A stretch of DNA of 64,000 bases, from NCBI GenBank assembly GCA_030704615.1, contig CM060734.1:11594001-11658000 (forward strand), read 5' to 3'. Every line of letters begins with the position of its first letter. The stretch's first letter is position 1. Positions 1 to 36,577 of the stretch are shown here, piece by piece. Made by a program: the position numbers and the translations under genes. The DNA is from Takakia lepidozioides (taxonomy: Eukaryota; Plantae; Bryophyta). The notes below the pieces were generated by a model that did not search any database, had not been told where the DNA came from, and saw nothing but the letters and a program-made list of their open reading frames with translations.

Positions 1-3000
1 GCATATGTGTGGGGGAAAAGAAGCGAAGGGATAGAGTGTGGCTAGATTTCAGGCACAAGATTACTTATGATTCCCTGTGAATCAATAGCTACTAGCAACC
101 TGCATGGGTAGATGGTCAACTGGAAGCTGTAGCAACAACAACACAATAGATAAATTCAGGCACTGCTAATGAAGGCACCTTCTTCAACACATTTCACCCT
201 ATTTTTCCCTCTTATCAGAATTGGCCCTGAATTTTCATGTTGAATTCTGCAAGGTGCTGGTTGAGTAAACCTTTGATAGTTTGGAGTGACTGACTAATAT
301 TGCCAATGTGACAACAGGAAAGTATCCAGAAACAGGTAACAGAGACAATGAGACAAGGAGCTGTGGAATGAATAGTTTTCTGACCCCAGTTAATGGTGGG
401 ACAATTGAGGCAAAAGGTAAATGCCTGTTGGATTACAGAGAGTAGCAAATGCAATTGAGCATAGGAACTAGTGTGATAAGTTGAGTTGGGTGTTTCCTAG
501 AACAATTCTAGGCTTTCATTGTCAGTTGCTAGCACCACAGAAAGGGTGAATGCATGATTTGTGTAGAGGCATGGATAGCTAAAGGAGCAGGGATAGAGTG
601 TGGGTCCAGATTCATCTAAGAGGGCCAGATTTCAAGCTCCACATTACCTGTGATTCCCTGGATCAATAGCTACCAGAAACCTGCATGGGTAGATGGTCAA
701 CTGGCAGCAGCGGCACAATTGATATAATCAGGCACTGCTAATGAAAGCATCTTCTTCATTACATTTCCCTCTTATTAGAATCGGCCCTAACTTTCCATGT
801 TGAATTCTACAAGTTAGCTGGTTGAGTGAATCTAGTTTGGAGTGACTTTGACATGATACTGCCGATGTGACAACAGGAAAGTATCCAGAACTAGGTAACA
901 GAGACGAGGACAAGTTGTGGAATGAATACTTTTCTGACCCCAGTCAATGGTGGGACAATCGAGGCAAGAAGGTGAATGCTTGTTGGATTATAGAGAGTAG
1001 CAGATGCAATTGAGCATAGGAACTAGTGTGATAAGTTGAGTTGGGTGTTTCCTAGAACAAATCTAGGATGTCATCGTCAGCTGCTAGCAGCAAGGCAAGG
1101 ATGTATGCTTGATTTGTGCAAAGGCATGGATAGCTGAAGGAGCAGGGATATGGTGTGGGTCCAGACTCAAGTGTTTCCGCCTTGGCAGGTTGCTCAGTGA
1201 CCTTCCCTGATAGCTTTGGAGTATAGTGAGTGTCTCACAATGCAATGTTGGTTGGTGCATCTTATGCAGGAACTTGGAAAACAAACAAATGTCATTTTTT
1301 GGAGCTTTAGGCTGAACCTCTGTGCTGGGCTGCATTGTGCAACCTGGCCTCTGCCTTAGACTCGGACTCAGATCTTTGATCTCAGACTCAGACTCTTTGA
1401 TGTCAGACTGAAGTGTATTTGGGCACTGAAGCACTTATGTAATTTTGAATTATCGTTGCATCTGTTCATTCTATCTGTTGTTCTGGCCATGCTTAGTCAG
1501 TTCTTCATGTCATGAGCAGGTTGTTGCCGTGATGCTTTGGAATTGTGTTTAGGTGTCTTTAGATCGTGATACTGACCACAAACAACCTATGGTGAACTGT
1601 GGTATCCTCCACATTTATGTGGAATGTCCTACAACGTAGGTCGTAGTATATTTCACACCCGCTATGGTCTTCTCCATAGTTATGTGGAATGACCTACAGT
1701 ATAGGCAGTAAAATACTCCACACCCACACCAAGAGTTGCTCCAAAATACGCCACGTGTTGCCCTGACAAAAATACACGTGGTGCCCATACCGTTGCCCAG
1801 ATGTCGTCAAGCCATGGTGACAGGCTGTCGCATAATTTTCCCATAGGTGTGGACAAGTCCACACCCTTTGTACGTCTAGGATCCACGTGGCGGTGTTTGC
1901 CAAAGCACACATCGCCCGTGGAAAAAGCCATTCACCCCGTGAAAAAAGCCACCTCTGGATTCAGCCACCCGTGGACTTTTCCACAGGGCCACCCGAGAGC
2001 CAGGCCGTCCACGGGGTGTCCGAAAGCACTAGTTGTTTCTTACACCCACGACAGGTGTGGATTGCAGCTGATTCCACAACAAAAAGTGTGGAAAAAGCCG
2101 TGGAAAAAGCCGGTTTCTCTTCTAGTGAGAGGGCCGGATTTCAAGCTTCAGATCACCTATGACTCCCTATGGAAGGATAACTACAAGAAAACCTGCATGG
2201 GTAGATGGTCAACTGGAAGCCGCAGCAGCATTGGCACGATTGATAAAATCAGGCACTGCTCATGAATGCACCTTCTTCAACACGTTTCACCCTGTTTTTC
2301 CCTCTGATCAAAACCAGCCCTAAATGTTGAATTCTGCAAATGAGCTGGTTGAGTGAACCTTAAATAGTTTGGAGTGACTTTGACATGATACTGCCAATGT
2401 GACAACATGATTAGTATCTAGAAACAGGTAACAGAGACGAGGAGAAGCTGTGGAATGAATACTTTTCTGACCCAGTCAACGGTGGGAGAATCGAGCAAAA
2501 AAGTGAATGCCTGTTGGATTACAAAGAGTAACAGATGCAATTGAGCATAGGAACTAGAGTGATAAGTTGAATTGGGTGTTTCCTAGAACAGATGTAGGCT
2601 GTCATTGTCAGCTTCTAGCACCAAGGCAAGGATGTATGCACGATTTGTGCAAAGGCATGGATAGGTGAAGGAGCAGGGATATAGTGTGGGTCCAGATTCA
2701 TCCAAGAGGGCCACATTTCAAGCTCCACATTACCTATGATTCCTTGTGGAAGGATAGCTACAAGAAACCTGCATGGGTAGATGGTCAACTGGAAGCCACA
2801 GCAGTAGCGGCGCCACAATTGATAAAATCAGACACTGCTAGTGAGGGCACCTTTTTCATCACATTTCACCCTATTTTTTCCTCTTATTACAATCCTTCTT
2901 CCATGTTGAATTCTGCAAGTTAGCTGGTTGAGTGAACCTTTGATAGTTTGGAGTGACTTTGACATGATACTGCCAAAGTGACAGTAAAATATCCAGAAAC

Positions 3001-4149
3001 GGGTAACAGAGATGATGAGAAGCTGTGGAATGAGTACTTTTCTGACCCCAGTCAATGGTGGGACAACCGAGGCAAAAAGATAAATGCCTGTATAATTACA
3101 GAGAGTAGCAGACGCAATTCAACATAGGAATGAGTGTGATAAGCTGAGTTGGGTGTTTCCTAGAACAAATGTAGGCTGTCATTGTCAGCTGCTAGCAGCA
3201 AGGCAAAGATGTATGCATGATTTGTGCAGAGGCATGGATGGTTGAAGGAGGAGGGATAGAGTGTGGGTCCAGATTCATCCAAGAGGGCCGGATTTCAACC
3301 TTCGGATTACCTATGATTCCCTGTGGAAGGATAGCTACAACAAACCTGCATGGGAAGATGGTCAACTAGAAGCCGCAGCAGCAGCGGGACAATTGATAAA
3401 ATCGGCAGTTCTAATGAAGGCACATTCTTCAACACATTTCACCCTGTTTTTCCCTCTTATCAGAACCGGCCCTAAATTTCCATGTTGAATTCTTCAAGTT
3501 AGCTGGTTGAGTGAATATAGTTTGGAGTGACTTTGACATGATACTGCCAATGTGACAACAGGAAAATATCGGAAAATAGGTAACAAAGACGAGGAGAAGC
3601 TGGGGAATGAACACGTTTCTGACCCCAGTCAACGGTGGGACAATCGAGACCAAAAGGTGAATGCCTGTTAGATTACAGAGAGTAGCCGACACAATTCAGC
3701 ATAGGAACTAGAGTGATAAGCTAAGTTGGGTGTTTCCTAGAACAACTCTATGCTGTCATTGTCATCTGCTAGCAACAAGTGCAAGGATGAATGCATGATT
3801 TGTGCAGACGTATGGATAGCTGAAGGAGCAGGGATAGAGTGTAGGTCCAGATTCATCCAAGAGGGCCGGATTTCAAGCTCCAGATTACCTATGATTCCAT
3901 GTGGAAGGGAAACATGCATGGGTACATGGTCAACTGGAAGCCACAGCAGCAGCGGCACAATTCATAAAATCAGTCACTGCTAATCAAGGCACCTTCTTCA
4001 ACACACTTCACCCTGTTTTCCCCTCTTATCATAATCGGCCCTAAATTTTCATGTTGAATTCTGCAAGTTAGCTGGGAACCTTTGATAGTTTGGAGCGACT
4101 TTGACATGATACTGCCAAAGTGACAACACAGAAGTATCCAGAAACAGGT
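1..4149 (+). repeat. ~560-580 bp tandem array (6 units visible, runs off the left edge, interrupted at ~1170-2127); each unit encodes one intron-split PDF motif of OSB-type proteins, mostly pseudogenised
   Basis: Unit landmark GGATAGAGTGTGG-like sequence recurs at ~29, 591, 1146, 2677, 3254, 3831. Segment 865-971 translates DVTTGKYPELGNRDEDKLWNEYFSDPSQWWDNRGKK then GT. After ...GGTCCAG the next segment translates IHPRGPDFKLQITYDSLWKDSYKKPAWVDGQL (ORFs 2684, 3261). Joined, this fits the PDF motif consensus LW..FF..P..WWDNR..K.NP..PDFKHK.T...LW.......P.WV..QL. Confidence 0.85.
1170..2127. mobile_element. CACTA (En/Spm) transposon remnant inserted in the PDF array; one terminus visible
   Basis: Ends ...GGTTTCTCTTCTAGTG at 2127 (reverse complement CACTAGAAGAGAAACC), preceded by GTGGAAAAAGCC-type subterminal repeats. 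The array resumes at 2128 (AGAGGGCCGG). Confidence 0.7.
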
Positions 4150-5202
4150 TCCAATCTTGGTCGTTACGGACTCATGGATTTGTGCATTGTATGGGGCAGT
4201 TTTGAGGTGTTATCTTAATACATTGTCACGTGCCCTTGTTCATGCAGTTCATTTGATTTCGTGCATTGATGGCATGGTATGTATGTTCTGAAGTCTGAAT
4301 CACATAGGCAATGACATGATCATCCCCAGTGTACAGGGATTGTGTTGGTTGCAATGCTGTAGTAGATCGATCATAGACTCCGTGTTGCTATTCAGACATA
4401 GTGGAAACAATATTGCACTTGTATGAACTACAAGTCGCAGCCCCCAAGTCAGTGCAACCAGCAGGAGTGCCCGGTTCCCAACCCACAGTCGATGTAGTCA
4501 CTAGTGAGGTAGTGCATTTCAAACCTCCAGTTGCATCTGTCACTTCAACACTCCAGTTGTCGAATCCACTTGCAAATAGTGAAGGCAACCAGCAGACAAC
4601 TCACTGCGCCAGGTGTTGTGGCCTCAGGCCTGCACGTGGCAAGACCCGGGAAGCCACACGTGTCCTTGAAGGTAACCGCTAGTCCAGTCGCTACTACGAG
4701 TCCAGCACTCCGAGACGTAGTTCACAACTTCGTAGTCTGACCGTGCAGTCGTTGAAATGACTTGCTAGTTATTTTTGAATCAGTGGTTAGTGCTCGTGTA
4801 GTACAAGATCGTAACTATTCAGCAACGTGAAGCAATGCGGCTACGGCGCGTGTCCTATCTCCAAGAGAACACGTGGAGTTTTTACACCGAGCCACGCAGT
4901 TGTATTCCCGACGTGCACACAGTGGGGAAGTCGGAACCCGCCGGTCAAAAGTCCACTGTGGTCAAGGTCCAAGATTCAGTCAACGCCGCGCGTGGCGACG
5001 CCACATGGCCACACCTTAAAAATTACCCTACAGTCGGCGTCACGACTGACTGGAACAACTCCGACCACGTAATGACCGGAACAACTGGGCTATCCGATAG
5101 GTCTTGTCCTTTCGGACTCATAGTCACCTAGTCATTTTTTGACTAAAACGACTGGGTTTCCAGTCGTTTTTTGAGTCGTTATTTCGGCAATTCCTTGTAG
5201 TA
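4150..5202. mobile_element. Probable CACTA transposon end (degenerate)
   Basis: Dense GTCG/CGAC/GACT subterminal motifs; ends ...AATTCCTTGTAGTA (reverse complement TACTACAAGGAA, one mismatch to CACTACAAG). Truncates the PDF array at 4149. Confidence 0.5.
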
Positions 5203-5527
5203 CACCGCAGCGCGCCCGCACACCATCGAGCATCTTCATGCTGGTGGTTTTGGTGACGCACCAAGGATGGCCGTCATGTTTCCTATCCATATCTGTCAAC
5301 ATTCCGGACGCCCTTGAATAGTCCGTTCGAGGAGGGAACTCAAAGAAGATATTGCCTTCGACGTCTGCGGGAAGGCATGTCACAGATTTAATTGCAAACT
5401 TGTTGTAGTCCAGCCCAGCCAGCTCCGAGCGGTGTCCCTCCATGTGAAGCCCTCGCAGAATATCAAGAATGGACCGAGTTGCTGAACTCGTGCTGGGAAT
5501 ATGACTCCCTCGTCCGTTGATGTCCAT
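5203..5527 (-). pseudogene. Transposase-like N-terminal fragment (MULE/SWIM-associated type)
   Basis: ORF 5132-5527: LDYNKFAIKSVTCLPADVEGNIFFEFPP...DMDRKHDGHPWCVTKTT resembles plant MULE-associated proteins I recall. Truncated by the CACTA-like end. Confidence 0.4.
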
Positions 5528-6221
5528 TGAGGACGTGTTGCAGGTAACTGGCCTGATGGCAATACAAGGCTAATAATCTTTGGCAAAGGTCCAGTAGAGC
5601 TTACCAACACTGTTTTCCAGGAGGCTTATGCCAGGGTTTGCACATAAACCTCACTATGCTCCGTTCCACACCAGATTCAAGTCTGAAAGAGGCCTGTCAG
5701 TGCCTTATCAGGCTGCCATCTTAGAAATCAAGGCCTCATCTTCCTTAGAACCTGACAGCCACTGAGGCCTTACCCATAAAACTCACCTCCTCTTTAAGGC
5801 CAAAACAGTACCTAGCTTAATAATCCACAGGCACCGCTGTCAAAGATTACAAGACAAGGTAAGGTCCAGATGCTGGGCTTCAAGAGACAGGCCTGCCAGG
5901 CCGAAATGCTCCATCAAAGGCAGCAAAACATAAGTCAAAAGTAAGCATCAGCATGCCAAACCAGGAGCAAGCGGGCCGAAATCGGGGCTGCAGGCAACAG
6001 CCAGGTCAAGACGCCATACACTATAGGCTCCCTTTGCCCACATCCATATCTGCAAGCTCAAGAGAATTCAAAGCAAGTAGGGATCCTCACCTGGTCCCAT
6101 CACAAGCCCCCACAAAAACCAACAGGTTAGTGAGGATTGTGAAACCCCAGGTGAATCATAGACCCCTACACTTGTCATCGATGATGGATTATTTTTTGGA
6201 AGAGGGCTTGGTCCCGGGCAC

Positions 6222-6920
6222 TCAAGATGTTTGTGTGTCCATGTCTTGAATCTGTAATATGGCAGGCCGTTCTTCCATTCCCAAGATTCCTTGCATGATG
6301 CATGTCTTGGGGCAATTATGAATGGTATAGAATGAGGCTGCAATCTGTCTTGTCATGCCCAAGAGGGTTACTTGGTTGCATGTTTGGAAACTGAAAAACT
6401 GCAGGCTGGTCCATCAAGATGCTTGTGTATACATGTCTTGAATCTATAGTATGGCAGGCTGTTCTTAACTACCCAAGGGGCCTTGCATGATGCATGTCTT
6501 GGGGTAATTACAAATGGTAAAGAATGAGGCTGCAATATGCTTTGTCATGCCCAAGAGGGTTATTTGGTTGCATGCTTGGAATTTGCCAAAACTGTAGGCT
6601 GGTCCATCAAGATGCTTGTGTGTACATATCTTGAATATGTAATATGGCAGGTTGTTCTTACTTGCCCAAGATGCCTTGCATGATGCATGTCTTGGGGTAA
6701 TACTAATAAGGTAGGCTGCAAATTATTTTGTCATACCCAAGATGTTTGCTTGAAGGGCATGTCTTGAATCTGTAATATTGCAGGTTGGCTTCACATACAC
6801 AAGATGTTTTGCTCTAGAATGTATGTCTTGTTGTAATTATGATGCCAGGAAAGGGTATGACAGGCTGCAGCAATCTGATTTTTTAGTACACAAGATGTTT
6901 GCTGATATGCTTGTCTTGTT
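6222..6920. repeat. Higher-order tandem repeat: ~192 bp unit made of three ~64 bp subunits
   Basis: CAAGATG(C/T)TTGTGT...CATGTCTTGAATCTGTAATATGGCAGG recurs at ~6223, 6415, 6608 and 6738. Most subunits carry a CAAGA...TCTTG inverted pair. Confidence 0.8.
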
Positions 6921-9519: not shown

Positions 9520-12414
9520 GGGGAACTTCACCAAGGCAATCCCAGAGGCAACTTTCAGGGTAATCCAAGGGGGAATTACCAGCCAGGGAATCATGATTAT
9601 AGAAATAATCCCATAATGGACCAAGGGCGGGGACCCAATGGTGAAGAACTGTGTTACTATTGTAACCAATTAGGACATTGCAAGGCAGCCTGTCCATTCT
9701 GGATCAGACACCAGAATGAGATGAGAGCTCCTATGAATGAAGGCCCAGTAGTGGCAGCTCACATGGTTATGCCATGTTTTGTACCAGAAGTGAGTACAAT
9801 GATAGTTACCAGAAGCAAAGCTAAACTATTACCTCCAGTGGATGAGGAAGAAGATGAGAATGAGGATGGCAGTGATGTGCCGGAAGATGATGAGGCTTGG
9901 AGAGATCAGAAGGAACTGCACAAGGAAGTGGTAGATACCATAAGGGAAATGCAGAAGGATACTGATATCCCTATGGCGGATTCATCTGACTCTGAAAGAG
10001 AAGATGAAGATGAGGAAATGAGGAAGCAAGATGTTTCACAGATGCAGAATACTGAAGGGACTTTGGCTGAAGTGATATGCCAGTCCAAAGCAGAGATTAC
10101 AATTGGGCAGCTATTGGTTGTGGCACCCCACTGTAAACACAGGCTGTATGAGGCAATTAATCAGATTGCTCATGGGACAAAAGATACAGACCTGACCTGT
10201 AAGGTGACAAGTTTTAATGTGCAGCCCAAAGGACGAGAAACTGTCATGGACTTTGATGATTCCATGCCAGTAATCCAATTGAGAATTGGAAGCACAGACC
10301 TGACTGATGTACTGATTGATGGAGGCTCAGGAATGAATATCATGACAGACCAGATAAGGCAGAAGCTTAGTTTGAGTAACATGAAACCATCCCCATTCAC
10401 AGTAACAATGGAAGATCAAAGCAGTGTACAGCCATTGGGCTTGATAAGAGGAGTAAGAATACAGATTCAGAAGTTGGTCTTTAAGATCACTGTGACTGTA
10501 TTGAAAATGGATGATGTCATGGAAGCTTATTCCTTATTGTTAGGATGACCATGGCTGAAACAGGCCAAGGTATTCCATGACTGGAATACTCAAATTCTAA
10601 TTGTGCGCAAGGATAAGCACAAAATACAAATTTCAACTAAGAAGTCAGGTAGACTACCTGCTACCAGGAGACCTCGTGGAGTCAGGGAGTATGACTGGAG
10701 AGGAGGACTTAATGAAGAGCAGGAGGCTACTCTGTTTGCTACACACCTAGAGTGGGAGCAGGTTGCAGAAATGCTGGGAGGACTAAGTTGTTTCAAAGGT
10801 ATATGCTGTGGTGTAGTAACAGCCACACCAATTGAGGGGGAAACAAGCAGTTACCCACCACATTCCTATGAAGAAAGAGAGGGAGAAATAGAAATCCTAG
10901 AGGAACCAGCCACTGTGAGTTTGTAGGACAAAGTAGTGGCTGGATGGACAATCACAGCTGAAGAGCAGGTGAGAGAAGTGAATGTGAGAATTGAGGAGGA
11001 ACCAAGAATGGTAAAAGTTGGGGCTGACTTGTAACCTGAATTCTTTGAGGAAGCTAAGAGCTTATTTATCAAATACAAAGATGTATTTGCTTGGAGCTAT
11101 GAAGATATGAAAGGGATACCCCCTGAGCATAAGATTGAGTTGGAACCAGGTTCAGTACCAATCAAGCAGGCAAGATACAAGATAAATCTCTATGCACAGA
11201 AGGTTGGGGAAGAGATAAAGAAGTTGGCTGAGGCTAAGTTTATATACCCGATAGAGTACACCACTTGGCTAGATCACCTATCCTGATAGTTCCCAAGAAG
11301 AATGGCAAACTGAGAGTTTGTGTGAACTACAAGAAGCTAAATGATTATACAAAGAAGGATCCATTTCCTTTGTCATTCACAGAAGCTGTACTAGATACTG
11401 TAGCAGGCCATGAGATGTACTCATTCATGGATGGCTTCAGTGGGAATAACCAAGTACAAGTAGCTAAAGAGGATCAGGGAAAGACAGCTTTCATCACTGA
11501 CTGGGGTGCTTATGCATACAAAGTCATGCCTTTTGGACTTTGTAATGCACCAACAACTTTCCAGAGAGTGATAAGTGAATCTTTCCATGAGTACTTGGAT
11601 GATTTCATGCAAGTGTTCTTAGATGACTTCGGTGTTTACAGCTCTAAGAATGAGCACTTGCAGAAGTTGGAGTTATGTTTGGCCAGATGTAGGATGAGAG
11701 GTCTTGGGCTGAATCTAGAAAAATGTACTTTTTGTGTGAACTCAAGAGTTCTTTTGGGACACATTGTGTGTCAGAAAGGGTTGCTTGTAGATCCTAGAAA
11801 GACTGAGGTTATTAAGGCCTCTCCACCACCAAGTAACGTTAAGGCTCTGAGGAGGATCCTTGGACAAACCAGTTATTACAGAAGGTTTGTCAGACGATAT
11901 GCACAGAAGGCAACACCATTGAGCAAGCTCTTGAAAAAGGATGCAGGGGGGTAGCTATGGAGAAGGGGCAGTACAGGAAGGAGAGCAGGTGGAGGAGGAG
12001 ACAATGGAGTGTAGTTTGATGTTTGCAAGCTGTAGAGATGTCATCGTAGTGTAGACTTAGTGATACGAAAGGCCTCGGCCTAACTCAGGACACTGATATT
12101 AATGCAGATTCTCATTCCATATACGCACGTGTAGAGAGACCAGAATGAAGTGGTGGAATGCTTAGATAGAGGTAGAGAAATGAACTGGCAGGTTGCATGA
12201 GCAACCAGTAACATAACTTTAAGCATTAAAGACTTGAGCCTCTCATCATGAGTGTAATCAAAGTATAGGGAAGAAGAACATCCCCATGATACACTAGGTG
12301 TAGGTCATGACAGATTATTCTGAGCGGGCTGAGTACTTAGAGATTTCTAACTCTTCTACCCTAGAGTTTCCACCCCGGATAGCTAAGGGATGGGTGAGTA
12401 AAAGCCATTCAATA
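9520..12414 (+). mobile_element. Ty3/Gypsy family 1, internally deleted copy: gag end, protease, RT, fused to the distal part of an LTR
   Basis: CYYCNQLGHCKAAC knuckle; LIDGGSG protease; RT motifs KLRVCVNYKKLN, FMDGFSG, MPFGLCNAP, FLDDF. Pol breaks at ~11945. 12290-12414 matches the LTR ends at 23733 and 37166. Confidence 0.9.
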
Positions 12415-26173: not shown

Positions 26174-29100
26174 AAGATTGGTGATCAATAAGTAAAGGAA
26201 AATTAAGTCGTGATACGGATTCTGGCAAGATGGTGTAAATCTTTGAGAAAGGGTAGAGACCACTATAATTTTCTTTACTGACATACCAAGGCTTATTAAA
26301 GGGTGCTGAAAAGGAATTATGTATATGATGTGGGAATGAATGAGGAAATTAAGGAAAAAGCTAATCAAGACAGAGCTGAAAGAATAGAGAAATATGCTGC
26401 AGAAAGGGAAGCTCGGTTGAGAAAAGAGTTCCCGAAATTACAAAGCTTGAATATTATTCAAGGTGAGGCATCAAGACAAATTGACAGTGATAAACCAGAA
26501 GATCAGGAAATCGGATCTTTGGAAAGTGAGAACACTACACCAGAAGGAGTTGCAAGTAATGCACTTGGCGAATGGTTATCACAAGAAAGATCTAAAGGAC
26601 CTTCCATAGTAACAAGTCCAAATCGAGGTTTTGCTGAAATATTGGAAGAAAAATTTGAGAATATTCTGAGTGAAGAAGGTGAAAAAAGTGAAACTACTTC
26701 TTCAGAAAGGATAACCAGGACTGCACTCAAAGCTTTTAAAGACTCATTAAGCTTAGTAGGGACAACAGCTGGAAGACGGCTATCCTTGGGACAAGGACCT
26801 CCTAGTTTTGAATCATTGTTTGGAAGACCAACACCAACACCAACAACACCACTAGCCTTGACAATCCCAACACCAACACAGCCAGCAACAACAGGACCAT
26901 TTCAGTTTGGACAGCCGGTTGCACCAGCAGCACCAATGGCTTTAGCAGCAAGCAAAACCAGACCACCGTTTCCTTTATATGATAGGAAATCTGACCCAGA
27001 TATCCATCTCAATCAATTTGAGAACATGTGCACCATTTACAATGAAGCAACAAACCATGAAAAGATCCGATTATTTCCTTGTTCAATGGCCAAAAAAGGC
27101 ATTGAATGGTTGGCAACCTTTCCAGCCAATCACTTTGCAAATTGGGCGGATATGAGAGCCACATTTCAAGAACGATATAGATCCAACAAATCCACGTCTG
27201 AAATCTTCACAGGATTACAGAACCTGAGACAAAAAAAGAAAGAATTGGTAGTTGACTACCTGGAGAGAATGAAGACTCTAATCAGGAAGCTACCTCAAGC
27301 ACCAGGTAACGACTTGCAAAAATCATGGTTCATCAATGGACTGGAACTACAAAGATTTGAAGGGTATACCTTCCAACATCTGTCAGCACCGAATTGAATT
27401 GGAAGTTGACATGAAACCAATTCGTCAGAACCGTTACAGAATGAACCCCAACTATGCAGCTAAAGTTTGGGAAGAAATCAAGAAATTACTGGATGCAGGA
27501 TGCATATACCCAGTAGAGACACCACAATGGTTATCACCCATTGTGATAGTACCCAAGAAGAATGGAAAATTACGAGTATGTGTGGACTACCACAAATTAA
27601 ACGCAGGAACCAAGAAAGACCCCTTTCCACTACCTTTCACAGAGATAGTGTTGGACACAGTGGCAGGACATGAGATGTACTCATTCATGGATGGGTTCAG
27701 TGGGTACAACCAGGTGCATATGGCAGAAGAAGACCGAGAAAAGACCGCATTCATCACTGAATGGGGAGCCTATGCTTACAAAGTCATGCCATTTGGACTT
27801 TGCAACGCACCAACCACGTTTCAGCGAGCAGTATCTGAGATATTCAAGAATTATCTCAACGACTTTATGCAGGTATTTTTATGATTTCAGTGTCTTCGGA
27901 CAGAAATCCAAACACTTTGCACAGTTAAAACTTTGTCTATAAGTCTGCAGAAACAATGGAGTAAGTCTCAATCCGGAAAAATGTACATTTTGTATGAATT
28001 CAAGATTACTGTTGGGACACATTGTGTGCCAACAGGGAATTCTGGTGGATCCAAAGAAAGTGGATGTTATCCAGAAAATCCCAAGAAACTCAAGAGATTT
28101 CTGGGACAGACAAGCTATTACAGAAGGTGCATGGCCAAATATGCTCACAGAGCGGCACCAATCTATAGACTGCTGAAGAAGGATGCCGAATATCGATGGT
28201 CTCCAGCTTGCCAGGAATCATTTGATTCACTAAAAATGGCACTCACAACAGCACCAATTCTAATAAATCCAAGATGGGATCTACCATTTCATGTACACAG
28301 TGATGCATCAGGCATTGCTTTGGGGGCAGTTCTAGCCCAGAATGTGACAGGCACAATAGATTCACCAATCTATTATGCAAGCAGATTGCTGACAGCAGCT
28401 GAGAAGAACTATAGCACCACGGAAATGGAAGCATTGGCAATGATTTATGGTGTTGCTTGATGGTTATCACTTCTTCATGAATATGATTTTGAAGTTGTTC
28501 ATAAACCAGGAAGATTACATGTTACAGCAAATCATCTGTCAAGAATTACTACAGGAGAACCAGCCACAAGAGTAGAGGATCAACTTCCCGACGCATTTCT
28601 GTTTGCTGTTCAACCAGAAGCACAAGATGAAGAGACAGATCCTCTAGGCGCTCTGGGAGTGTTTCAAGGAGACTATGACCTCCGATTTGGTTTAATCACA
28701 CAATTTGGTTGCCCACTGGAATTCGTCAGTGATCAATGATCACATTTTATAAATGATGCCATAAAATGCTTAACGGAGGAGTTCATGATCGTACATCACA
28801 AGAGCACTGCTTACTATCCCCAAGGAAATGGCCAGGCCGAATCTACCAACAAGATATTATGCACTATCTTAACCAAGATAGTAAATGCCAATCGTACAGA
28901 TTGGGACACCAAAATGAACACAACACTATGGGCATTCAGGACATCATACAAGGTGACCACGAAACATACACCATTTCAACTGGTGTATGGATCAGAGGCA
29001 CTATTACCCATTGAATGCATGATACCCACACTACGAACCGGAACTCATAAACGATGGGGTTTAGAGGAATCTCTACGAGTCAGGGAACATGAGTTATTTC

Positions 29101-31186: not shown

Positions 31187-34100
31187 TCATTGGTCTGCGG
31201 CTGGTTCCCTCCTTTTGGCTGCTTTAGCTTCCACCCACTTTGTAGTATAATCAGTGGCTGTGATTATATATTTGTTCTGTGTATTCTTGGCTGGTGGGTT
31301 AATTGGTCCAACAAAGTCTAGTCCCCATTTCTGAAATGGTTCAGTAGGCATCGTAGGATGCAAAGCCATCTTCCCAGATCTCTGCAATGGTCCTAGCCTC
31401 TGACACTCATCACAACTCTTACAATACTTGTGTACATCTTTGAACAAAGTAGGCCACCAGTAACCTGCAAGTAGTATCTTTCTACTGGTAGTCTCTTCTC
31501 CAAAATGACCTCCAGCCACTCCTTTATGAACTTCCTCCAAAACTTTATTTACTTCATGGTGATACAAGCATCGTTTAAGTACTCCATCAGGTCCTAGCTT
31601 ATACATTCTGCCCCCTACCATAGTATAAGGTAAAGTCTTGATAGAGATTCTCTTCCTCTGCTCCTTTCCATAACTAGGTGGGCACTGACCATGAGTAAGG
31701 TAGTATCTGATTGGCCACTGCTAATCTAACCAGTCATCTGCACTTCCCTGCACCTCCACCGCAAATAAACTCGCATCAGGTAATTGGTCGTCTACTCCTG
31801 TGGCGGGCTCTCTTGTTGATAGGCGTGACAAGTGATCTGCCACAAGATGCAAATGGCCAGGCTTGTAAACAACTTCAAACTCAAACTCGTGCAAGATTAT
31901 TAACCACCTTGCTATCCTTCCACTTATCAAAGGTTTGTTCACCAGATATATCAGAGCCTGGTGATCCACATAAAACATAAACTTCCTTCCCAATAGGTAA
32001 TGCCTGAATTTCTTGACTGCATAAATCATTGCCAATGCTTCTCTTTCAGTTGTGCTATAGTTCCTTTCAGCACTGTTCATCAACCTGCTAGCTTAGTACA
32101 CAGGTGAATCTATATTTCCTGTAACATTTTGGGCTAACACCGCTCCCAACGCTTCTCCTGAGGCATCACAGTGAACATGAAATATTACGTGCCAGTGAGG
32201 GTTAATCAACACAGGTGTAGTTGTTACTGACAATGTAAGTTCCTCAAAAGCATGTTGACATTCAGCTATCCATGCAAACACTGCATCTTTCTTCAGAAGC
32301 TTGCTCAATGGTGCTGCTATCTGTGCATACCGTCTGACAAATCTTCTGTAATAACTGGTTTGTCCAAGGAATCTCCTTAGACTCTTAACATTTACTGGTG
32401 GTGGAGAGGCTTTAATGGCCTCTGTCTTTCTGGGATCCACAAGAAGTCCCATCTTACACACAATGTGTCCCAAAAGCACCCTTGAGTTCACACAGAAAGT
32501 ACACTTCTCTGGATTCAGGCCCAGACCTCTCATCCTGCATCTGGCCAAACATAACTCCAATTTATGCAAGTGCTCATTCTTAGAGCTGTACACACAAGAA
32601 CACCTGCATGAAATCATCCAGATACTCATGAAAAGATTCGCTTATCACTCTCTCAAAGGTTGCTGGTGCATTACAAAGTCCAAAAGGCATGACTTTGTAT
32701 GCATAAGCACCCGAGTCTATGATGAAAGTTGTCTTTCCCTGGTCTTCTTCTGCCACTTGCACTTGATTATAACCACTGAAGCCATCCATGAATGAGTACA
32801 TCTCATGGCCTGCCACAGTGTCCAATACCGCTTCTGTGAATGACAAAGGGAAAGGATATTTCTTCGTACAAGCATTCAACTTCTTATAGTTCACACAAAC
32901 TCTCAGTTTACCATTCTTCTTGGGAAGTATTACAATGGGTGACAACCAAGTTGTATACTCTATCGGGTAATAAACTTAGCCTCAGCCAACTTCTTGATCT
33001 CTTCTCCAACCTTCTGTGCATAGTTGGGATTCATTCTGTACCTTGCCTGTTTGATTGGTACTGACCCTGGTTCCAGTTCAATCTTATGCTGACAGATCTC
33101 AGGTGGTATCCCTTTCAGATCCTTGTAGCTCCAAGCAAATACATCTTTGTATTTGATGAACAGACTCTTAGCTTCCTCAAAGAATTCTGGCTCCAAATCA
33201 GCCCCTACCTTCACCATCCTCGGTTCCTTTTCAGTTCCCACATTCACTTCTCTCACCTGCTCATCAGCTGTGATTGTCCAACCAGTCGCCACTTCATCAT
33301 GTAAACTCACAGTGGCTGGTTCTTCTAGGATTTCCATTTCTCCCTCTCTTTCTTCATAGAAATGTGGTGGGTAACTGCTTGTTTCACCCTCAATTGGTGT
33401 TGCTGTCACTACACCACAGCAGATACCTTTTAAACAACTTAGGCCTTCCAGTTGCATCTCTGCAACCTGCTCCCACTCTGGGTGTGCAGCGAACATGATA
33501 GCTTCCTGCTCCTCATCAAGTCCTCCCCTCCAGTCATACTCCCTGACCCCTCGAGGTCTTCTCATAGCAGGTAGTCTACTAGATTTCTTAGTGGTGATTT
33601 GTATCTTGTGCATCGCATCATGCACAGTTAGTAACTAGGAATTCCAATCATGGAATACCCTGGCCTGTTTCAGCCACGGTCGACCCAACAATAAGGAGTA
33701 AGCTTCCATGATTTCATCCATTTTCAACACAGTTACTATGATCTTAAAGATCATCTTTTGAATCTGTATCTTAACTCCTCTTATCAATCCCAATGGCTGT
33801 ACACTTCTTTGATTTGCCATTGTTACTGCAAATGGGGCTGGTTTCATGTTACTTAGACCAAGCTTTTGCCTTAATTGGTCTGTCATGATATTCACTCCAG
33901 AGCCTCCATCTATTAGTACATCAGTTAGTTTTGTGCTTCCAATTCTCAATTGGATTACTGGCATAGAATCATCAAAGTCCATGACTGTTTCTCGCCCTTC
34001 CGGCTTCACATTATAACTGGTCATCTTGCTGTTCAGGTCTGTGTTCCCTGTCACATGGGCAATTCGATTGATTGCTTGATACAGCCTGTGTCTACAATAA

Positions 34101-36577
34101 GGTGCCACAGCCAATAGTTGTCCAAAGGTAATCTCCGCTTTGGACTGGCATATTACTTCAGCCAAAGTCCCTTCATTACTCTGCATTTTTGCAGCTTCTT
34201 TCTTCCCTTCATCCTCACTCACTTCCTCTTCTCTTTCAGAATCAGAGGAATCTGCCATAGGAATATCAGTACTCTTCTGCATTTCCCTTATGGTATCTGC
34301 CACTTCCTTGTGCAGTTCCTTCTCATCTCTCCAAGCCTCATCATCTTCAGGCACATCACTGCCATCTTCATTATCATCACCTTCCTCATCTACTGGAGGT
34401 ATTATTTTGGCTTTTTCTTCTGGTTACTATCATTGTACTTACTTCTGGTACAACACATGGCCTAACCATGTGAGCTGCCACCACTGGCCCCTCATTCATA
34501 GGAGCTCTCATCACATTCTGGTGTCTGATCTAGAATGGACAGGCTACCTTGCGATGTCCTGCCTAATTACAATAGTAACACAGTTCTTCCCCATTAGGTC
34601 CTCGCCCTTGGTCTGTTCTGGGATTGTTTTTGTAATCCTGATTCCCTGGCTGGTAATTCCCCCTTGGATTACCCTGATAGTTGCCTCTGGAATTTCCTTG
34701 GAAATTCCCTCTTGGATTACCTCTCCTTCCATGCCATTGTTATAACCACCAGGCCTACCATAGTGGTCCTGATCACTGTTTCTTCTTGGTTGGGGTTGCA
34801 CTTGATGCACCCTTACTTGCCTAGGTTCTCTTGCTGCTGTCCTTCTGTTGTAGTAACAATTCTCAGTAGAATGGTTATCCATTTTACAGATAGTACAGTG
34901 TTTCTCCTTCATGTGACATTCAGTGGTGGTATGGCTTTCATTCTGGCATTTTGCACACCAAACACCCTTCCTCCAATGTGTTACAGCCTCTGTGGCATAC
35001 TTCTTCAAGATTTCTTCTAATCTTTTCTCATAGTTATCCCTCTTCAACTTTTCCTTCCTCTTACTCTTCTTCTTAAGCTCTTGCTCTTCTTCCTCATCTG
35101 ACTCATCCTCAGAGTCCTCATCATCCCTTTTCTCTCTCCTGAGCATTCCCAATTGCTCAATTCTGTTTGCTGTTTCAAATGCCTCCTCCATTGTATTATG
35201 GGGTAACATATCCACTTTCTTTTGCAACTCTGGTCTTAGTCCACTCACAAACCAAGTCTTCTGTAAACCTGGTGCTGGTACAGCAGCCAGCTTTTTCATC
35301 ATCAATTCCATCTTTTCCATATACTCCTCAACAGTTTCATGCTTCTTTTGCTTTAACTGTTGTAAACTTCCATACACTTCATCCTCAGTTTTACTTGTCC
35401 TGAACCTATTTCGGAATGCTGTATTCAAGCCATTCCAGGTTAGGAAATGATTATCAGGGAATCTTGCATACCATTCACTTGCTTTCTTTATAAGTGAACA
35501 AGGAAACAGTCTCATCTTGGCATCATCGCCATTTTCATTGTTCACAATACACATGTGCTCAAATTGGCTAATGTGTACATCAGGATCCCCTTTTCCTGAA
35601 TATATTGGAAAAGGTGATTTTGCCCGTGTTGGTTGTAACGCCATCTGTGGCCCTACCCCCTTGCTGGTGCTGGTCCTTGAGGACCTGTTGTAGTTGTGGT
35701 GGAACTTCCACCAAGTGCTGGCCCCTGAGCACTCCCTGCTACTGGCCCCACTATATTCACAGTATTCCCAGCTCCAGTTGCACTACTTCCCACACTCCCT
35801 ATCCCCCCAGAGCCAGATCCAGGCTGCCCGCCTGATCTTCCTGAGCCGACACCTTCGTTGCCCTGTGATCCAAGTGCTCCACTTGATCCAGGTCCAACGG
35901 GTTGGGATGTCCTGGTTGTAGTCTCAACCTCAGCTGTTGGGTCTACTTCTTCATACTATTCCTCTTCCAATTTCTTCTCTCTGTTTTCATCTTCCAAGTT
36001 CTGCCCTAGGGTTTCTTCTTCTTCACTCATGTAACTCAATTGCAATAGTGTTGGAGAGTCTGAACTCTCCGTTGGTTCTGCCCAAGTAGGCTTCCCATTT
36101 TTGCCTTTGCTTATTGGGAGTTGGTCATTTTGTGTCAACATAAGAGTTTTCAGGTGGCTAGTTTTGTCCAACTGACGTTTTTCATCAATAGAATCCTCCT
36201 TCTTCGTCTTCCATTTCAGAAACTGGAGTTCCTGCTTTTGGTGTTTCATGCCAACTCTTATCAAAGATTTCTGTCAAATCTTTTATCCAGGGATGTACCT
36301 CAGATCTTTCACCTCATGGTTGATTCATCTTCCTGTACCAATTCCCTTAATCTTTCTTGCAAAGAAAAAGAAGGAGTGACATCCAACTCTAGTTCTTCCG
36401 GTATGGGTGATGTACTCTCTGGTCTTAATGGTGTGAGAGGTCCAGATGATTCCCCTATGTCTATTCCTCTCTCCCAAAGATATGGATAATTAGCTTTCAG
36501 ATAACTTTCTCTTTTTGCTGAATATCTCTGGAGTCTAGCTTCTCTTTCATCACTCATGTCCCATGTCTTTCATTTCT

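Follow-up and report, generated by a model that had tools for sequence, protein, structure and literature searches.

A probable dead pseudogene array built from the PDF-motif exons of an OSB-type gene in Takakia lepidozioides

What is the tandem repeat that fills positions 1-4149 of a 64-kb stretch of Takakia lepidozioides DNA, and can it still encode a protein? The stretch (assembly GCA_030704615.1, contig CM060734.1, positions 11,594,001 to 11,658,000, in all 64,000 nucleotides) is called the window below. An earlier note, made from the letters of the window only, had described the repeat as a satellite-like array whose unit is a spliced module for the PDF motif of the plant OSB proteins, and had left it as either a decaying multi-PDF gene or a gene-derived satellite. 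Our analysis indicates that it is probably an unprocessed pseudogene array, derived from an OSB-type gene by copying at the DNA level, which is now dead and makes no PDF protein today. We hold this explanation, taken as a whole, to be likely but well short of certain.

The window was searched by BLAST with the unit at 2705-3281. Matches were obtained at 40-616, 619-1169, 2128-2704 and 3282-3859, together with a partial one at 3860-4149, and their identity to the query unit is 82-85% with E-values from 1e-85 to 0. The same search found no further copy outside 1-4149 in the 64 kb. The units are arranged head to tail with a period of 577 +/- 6 bp, and five full and two partial units lie in the window, so that the earlier count of at least six copies of about 575 bp was borne out and can be raised to at least seven. 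As a further unit has its tail at positions 1-39, the array runs past the left edge of the window. Its right end lies 18 nt into an exon 1 copy, at ...CCAGAAACAGGT, followed by TCCAATC. The array was missed by TRF, for which the maximum period was 500. Each unit contains two exon copies, here named exon 1 (E1) and exon 2 (E2), which correspond to the first and second halves of the PDF motif. The parts of the array and the condition of the copies are as follows.

1..39, plus strand: tail of an earlier unit (3' part of intron 1), from alignment and sequence; at the 39/40 junction the next exon 2 has lost its acceptor and its first codons to a 20-nt deletion.
40..618, plus strand: unit 1, with exon 2 at 40-230 (reading LDFRHKITYDSL..., with three in-frame stops and a frameshift), exon 1 at 320-416 (three stops, a 5-nt insertion and a 1-nt deletion) and intron 1 at 417-609.
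619..1169, plus strand: unit 2, with exon 2 at 610-790 (a frameshift from a 2-nt deletion, deletions of 9 and 12 nt, and two stops), exon 1 at 879-971 (intact, with the donor GTGAAT at 972) and an intron 1 that is cut just past its acceptor AG, at 1169.
1170..2127, no strand: an unrelated insertion of 958 bp between units 2 and 3.
2128..2704, plus strand: unit 3, with exon 2 at 2128-2323 (a 1-nt insertion causes a frameshift following ...NYKK), exon 1 at 2412-2502 (a stop, two 1-nt deletions, and the acceptor changed from AG to AT) and intron 1 at 2503-2695.
2705..3281, plus strand: unit 4, with exon 2 at 2696-2898 (open frame, PDF changed to PHF, and the ancestral stop deleted so that the frame extends to 2923), exon 1 at 2987-3079 (open reading frame intact, with AT in place of the donor GT at 3080 and 4 nt deleted at the acceptor) and intron 1 at 3080-3272.
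3282..3859, plus strand: unit 5, with exon 2 at 3273-3475 (intact PDF core, a 1-nt deletion in the tail), exon 1 at 3564-3656 (open, with both key tryptophans lost and key residues replaced, KLGNEHVSDPSQRWDNRDQK) and intron 1 at 3657-3850.
3860..4149, plus strand: unit 6, partial, with exon 2 at 3851-4044 (a 10-nt deletion causes a frameshift) and then spacer.

To identify the encoded peptides, the two exons were searched separately throughout. A profile of E1 was built from three open exon 1 copies (consensus GKYPETGNRDEEKLWNEYFSDPSQWWDNRGKK) and compared with 1.84 billion representative proteins. It gave 108 matches at E<=1e-3, the best of them of OSB type, and OSB proteins were matched at E-values from 4.6e-10 to 1e-3. 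All the matches align on LW..FF.DP.QWWD.R..K except for two unrelated repetitive proteins (P0020 and P0084), which were set aside as homologues. Three of the matched proteins (P0033, P0001 and P0015) have both the SSB fold PF00436 and one to three PDF motifs, and P0075, from Amborella, is named 'protein OSB3, chloroplastic/mitochondrial'. The E2 peptides match the residues right after the E1 match; for example, residues 353-390 follow residues 327-351 in P0001. Against the exon 2 product of Sphagnum the E-value of E2 is 4.5e-11, and against exon 2 of Physcomitrium patens (BLASTP) it is 4e-10, with 44% identity over 43 amino acids. The PDF motif of OSB proteins is about 50 amino acids long, as described in PMC6963530 and PMC13393729. 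Its first half, LW..(F/Y)F.(D/N)P..WWDNR..K, is present in E1 and its second half, P.PDFKHK.T...LW......P.W, is present in E2 (consensus RGPDFKLQITYDSLWKDSYKKPAWV), and P-D-F itself is retained in units 2, 3, 5 and 6. A Pfam search with the exon peptides and the open reading frames gave no match, but Pfam holds no PDF model, and therefore this result is not evidence against the motif. A homologue search with the 79-amino-acid open reading frame of E2 gave no candidate within the permitted range of lengths. Both the E1 profile and the E2 pairwise matches lead to OSB proteins, in agreement with the PDF module proposed before, and they support reading the unit as coding sequence of an OSB-type PDF motif.

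The two halves of the motif are separated by a spacer which had been taken as an intron, with the first half ending at AAG^GT and the second beginning after CCAG (^ marks an exon border). Both borders were found where they had been predicted: GT comes directly after KLWNEYFSDPSQWWDNRGKK, whose last position is 971, and IHPRGPDF... starts past CCAG at 2696, 3273 and 3851. For comparison we used two moss OSB genes in which SSB-fold exons are followed by one PDF motif, namely L003, from Physcomitrium patens reads (SRR191864, named as this species in PMC5021289), and L001, from a Sphagnum microbiome assembly (PMC9584203). The border between E1 and E2 reads ...WWDNRGKK^gtgaat...(193 nt)...ccag^IHPRGPDFK in the window and ...WWDNRAKK^gtgag...(142 nt)...cag^PSPKTPDFKHK in P. 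patens, while in Sphagnum the PDF motif is split by an intron at the same place and the spliced transcript (P0004) reads GKKQNPRYPDF. In the array and in both genes the intron lies at the same codon, in phase 0, five residues before P-D-F. Read-throughs into the same intron are seen in dozens of genomic fragments among the protein matches, which end in ...KKV or ...EKV. The acceptor of E1 in the array, acag^GA AAG TAT, splits a Gly codon in phase 1, as do those of the Sphagnum OSB gene (gtcag^GT AAT TAC) and of a Diphasiastrum gene that carries PDF motifs and PPR repeats. By homology with real OSB genes, the predicted first intron is genuine. Its retention in the copies indicates that they were copied from DNA and not from mRNA.

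Could any of these copies still contribute to a protein? Five E1-intron-E2 modules can be assessed, and all five carry a disabling lesion (stops, frameshifts, lost splice sites or the insertion), so none of them fits an intact OSB protein. In the module from 879, E1 is intact, but the start of E2 was destroyed by the 958-bp insertion and E2 is frameshifted; in the module with E1 at 3564-3656, E1 is open without its key tryptophans and its E2 has the 10-nt deletion. Tandem amplification of the module followed by decay, as previously supposed, is thus what the copies display. The substitution identity among units is 0.901 for the E1 core, 0.877 for intron 1, 0.869 for the spacer and 0.851 for E2. 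The option of a functional multi-PDF gene, which the earlier note had kept, fails on two counts: divergence is the same in exons as in introns, and no module is unbroken. The ratio of nonsynonymous to synonymous changes (pN/pS) is 0.4-0.8 on 16-88 substitutions, which are small counts and include 10 changes to stop codons. The observed/expected ratio of CpG is 0.13-0.31 in the array compared with 0.47 for the window, and G>A and C>T together make up 40% of the changes; the CpG depletion and the transition excess fit a repeat that would be methylated and silent. On the other hand, in the majority consensus of the units both E1 and E2 are open and GT...AG is restored, from which it follows that the progenitor unit was coding-competent.

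The relations among the copies carry little order. Pairwise unit identities are flat (0.83-0.89) and the informative splits conflict, with at most 5 sites each, which indicates a single amplification burst; the phylogeny is star-like, and therefore no duplication order can be read from it. Units 1 and 2 are nevertheless closer than units 3-6 (KLQ, WKDSYK) to canonical OSB PDF motifs: unit 1 has DFRHK, and both units have W/stop-INSY (at 48-80 and 659-680). This is a hint that the parent gene is closer to the left-hand units, in which case it would be situated upstream of the window.

We propose that 1-4149 would be the right-hand end of a head-to-tail array that arose by DNA-level copying of the PDF-coding part of a gene for an organellar ssDNA-binding protein of OSB type. 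The copied piece would comprise E1 (...GKYPETGNRDEEKLWNEYFSDPSQWWDNRGKK), the phase-0 GT-AG intron, E2 (IHPRGPDFKLQITYDSLWKDSYKKPAWVDGQLE..., on to the stop) and about 90 bp with the acceptor before E1. One progenitor unit with open frames would have been amplified in a short burst, most likely by unequal crossing-over, after which the copies would have drifted without selection until they stood about 13% apart, as they do now. The neutral rate in plants is about 5-7e-9 per site per year. At this general rate, which may not be that of the lineage, the divergence would give the array an age of roughly 10 million years. Of the gene-derived satellite suggested earlier, the first part stands, as the repeats are gene-derived and head to tail; a satellite is not shown, as the window has a single locus of the repeat, of at least seven copies.

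How the unit ends bears on what was copied and on whether the array was ever one gene. The earlier note saw an exon-intron-exon-intron cassette, which holds for the first intron and for the second acceptor, which is homologous to real ones; no unit, however, has a canonical second donor, and E2 runs to a conserved stop, so that there may be no second intron. A complete cassette can be seen in Diphasiastrum L008, a PPR gene with two PDF motifs, where E1 (phase 1 to 0), an intron, E2 (phase 0 to 1, donor TCT G^GTATGC) and a 149-nt intron lead to the next E1. The equivalent site in the array is a phase-1 Gly codon, from which a would-be intron of 142 nt extends from ...ANE G^GCACC to ...ACAG^GA AAG. 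All six units have G^GC as its donor, in the weak context AAG^GCACCT, and the sole in-phase GT in E2 (GAT G^GTCAAC) makes a poor donor and is the Gly codon of GQLE, which is also in P. patens. The E2 consensus frame has 67 codons to the stop, kept in five of the six units, and the moss terminal exon has 64-65. We lean slightly towards E2 having been the last exon of an OSB gene with one PDF motif, so that the copied segment would be the 3' end of that gene; nearly as probable is a two-intron cassette, taken from a gene that already had several PDF motifs and in which the donor had already changed to GC. The same observations can be set against a different account, in which the array is, or recently was, one gene for a multi-PDF protein, with the second intron joining E2 to the next E1 in frame. 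The L008 cassette shows that such genes are real, the array has the Gly codon, the would-be intron and the homologous acceptor at the right places, the consensus frames are open, and multi-PDF OSB proteins are known, with up to five PDF motifs in Amborella (PMC13393729). We consider this account unlikely, given GC instead of GT in every unit and no better donor in phase, exons kept no better than introns, no unbroken module, and an E2 frame whose length is near that of a moss terminal exon. It is very improbable that an OSB gene peculiar to this lineage once encoded at least seven PDF modules in one protein, with GC-AG second introns, and that the array is what decay has left of its tail, with intact and expressed units perhaps persisting upstream. 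If this were true, at least seven PDF motifs in one OSB protein would exceed the five reported for any OSB.

Several observations weigh against a dead, OSB-derived array or leave parts of that explanation unsettled. For E1, pN/pS is 0.42-0.47, below 1, on counts too small to judge, and this could reflect a short period of constraint. Low-level or aberrant expression of the array may also occur. The E2 tail has a weak and uneven similarity to moss OSB C-termini (p 0.02-0.6), by which the choice between a terminal exon and a cassette is not settled. The parent gene is not among the 64 kb, and a tblastn search with OSB proteins found no OB-fold match there, the OB fold being expected upstream of the PDF motif and hence outside the window. 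The copied source is nevertheless assigned to the OSB type on its residues: E1 is identical at 19 of 21 positions to the OSB proteins of P. patens and Sphagnum, compared with 15-17 of 21 for E1 of the PPR type (EKLWREFFSDPSQWWDHRSEK), E2 is 44-48% identical to moss OSB and 34-37% to the PPR type, and the array has WNEYF and GKK in E1 and DSYK.P.WV.GQLE in E2, which are OSB-type. These figures are also what makes it decidedly unlikely that the units were copied from the 5' PDF exons of a PDF-PPR(-DYW) editing-factor gene of this genome. Such fusions are real in seedless plants (P0090 in Sphagnum compactum, P0095 in Diphasiastrum, P0007 in Adiantum) and carry the same intron inside the PDF motif, but no PPR tract was found anywhere in the 64-kb window, downstream of the array included. 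A transposon of Pack-MULE, Helitron or CACTA type might instead have captured the gene fragment, so that the array would be its internal tandem repeat and would have many genomic copies. Internal tandem arrays are common in plant transposons, and the window, which is plant-like nuclear sequence with a GC content of 45%, is rich in transposons, including the reverse transcriptase (RVT_1) and gag reading frames listed below. We give this account very little credence, as neither terminal repeats nor a transposase adjoin the array, the downstream flank 4150-6200 occurs once within the window, and the unit itself has no other copy in the 64 kb. The transposon reading frames of the window are as follows.

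11265-11954: RVT_1 open reading frame.
26303-27397: gag open reading frame.
33635-35644, minus strand: gag and gag-protease open reading frames, with gag at 34544-35644.

The insertion at 1170-2127 begins directly after the acceptor AG and takes the place of TTCATCCA, 8 nt which make up the greater part of codons 1-3 (IHP) of exon 2 in unit 3. It occurs once within the window, and no terminal inverted repeats or target-site duplication were recognised in it; its 154-amino-acid open reading frame (1801-2265) has no Pfam match. Inside it a 65-bp sequence is repeated (two copies, 1597-1725), and there are four GTGGAAAAAGCC-like motifs and several TGTGGA/TCCACA palindromes. Another repeat, with a period of 192 bp, lies about 2 kb downstream of the array at 6222-6701 (2.5 copies, 86% matches). 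A scan of the window with Rfam found no family, and two metagenome scans, with an exact 25-mer of the unit and with an E2 peptide pattern, gave no match.

When compared with known systems, the array is most like the single-PDF OSB genes of mosses (P. patens L003 and Sphagnum L001; P0033 and P0004). E1 is 64-72% and E2 44-48% identical between them and the array, the phase-0 intron lies at the same codon, the E1 acceptor splits a Gly codon in phase 1, and the E2 frame has 67 codons in the array compared with 64-65. The array differs in having no visible SSB/OB-fold exons, in repeating two exons at least seven times, and in having all its copies broken; nor can one recognise in it the DFKDF with which the moss proteins end at their C-terminus. 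With the multi-PDF OSB proteins of seed plants, such as the Amborella 'protein OSB3' (XP_006845708.2), it shares the tandem PDF modules. These proteins are Group III in PMC13393729. Among OSB proteins the PDF copy number ranges from one to five. Theirs, however, are two to five in-frame modules in one expressed protein, whereas the modules of the array are parted by stops, frameshifts and a missing canonical donor. The PDF-PPR(-DYW) genes of Diphasiastrum (KAJ7568884.1/L008) and Sphagnum compactum (CAM6033764.1/L007) have the same two-exon PDF cassette with the same intron, and in the Diphasiastrum gene a second intron of 149 nt lies between successive PDF motifs, with phases 1-0-0-1. In contrast, the residues of the array are OSB-type, it has no PPR tract in the window, and it has GC at the would-be second donor. 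Finally, it resembles unprocessed (duplicative) pseudogene arrays and tandem repeats of gene fragments in the kept intron, the head-to-tail units, the neutral decay and the depletion of CpG.

To our knowledge, how PDF modules multiply and move has not been described so far. The array shows the raw material of such a process, namely a PDF exon pair that was duplicated together with its intron at the DNA level. In real genes the pair is flanked by phase-1 introns, and therefore, given a donor, every duplication would lengthen the protein by one in-frame module. Duplication of this kind plausibly underlies the growth of PDF copy number in OSB proteins and the spread of the motif to PPR genes. The array itself would be a dead by-product of duplication without function, and its value is as an illustration and as a warning for annotation, as gene finders may call its fragments.

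The searches also returned PDF motifs outside OSB proteins. PDF motifs precede PLS-PPR(-E-DYW) tracts in a moss (P0090, Sphagnum compactum CAM6033764.1), a lycophyte (P0095 and P0142, Diphasiastrum complanatum, L008) and a fern (P0007, Adiantum capillus-veneris KAI5061374.1), and short fragments such as EKLWREFFSDPSQWWDHRSEKV, which read through from exon 1, number in the dozens and suggest that the PDF-PPR family is large. A dinoflagellate product of 286 amino acids (P0107, from the Biecheleria cincta transcriptome, EukProt EP00930) shows four motifs that are clearly PDF-like (WWDNR...PDFK...LWL) and lacks an OB fold. As the PDF motif has been described as specific to green plants and algae, this product would point to contamination, to a plastid-related transfer or to a wider distribution of the motif.

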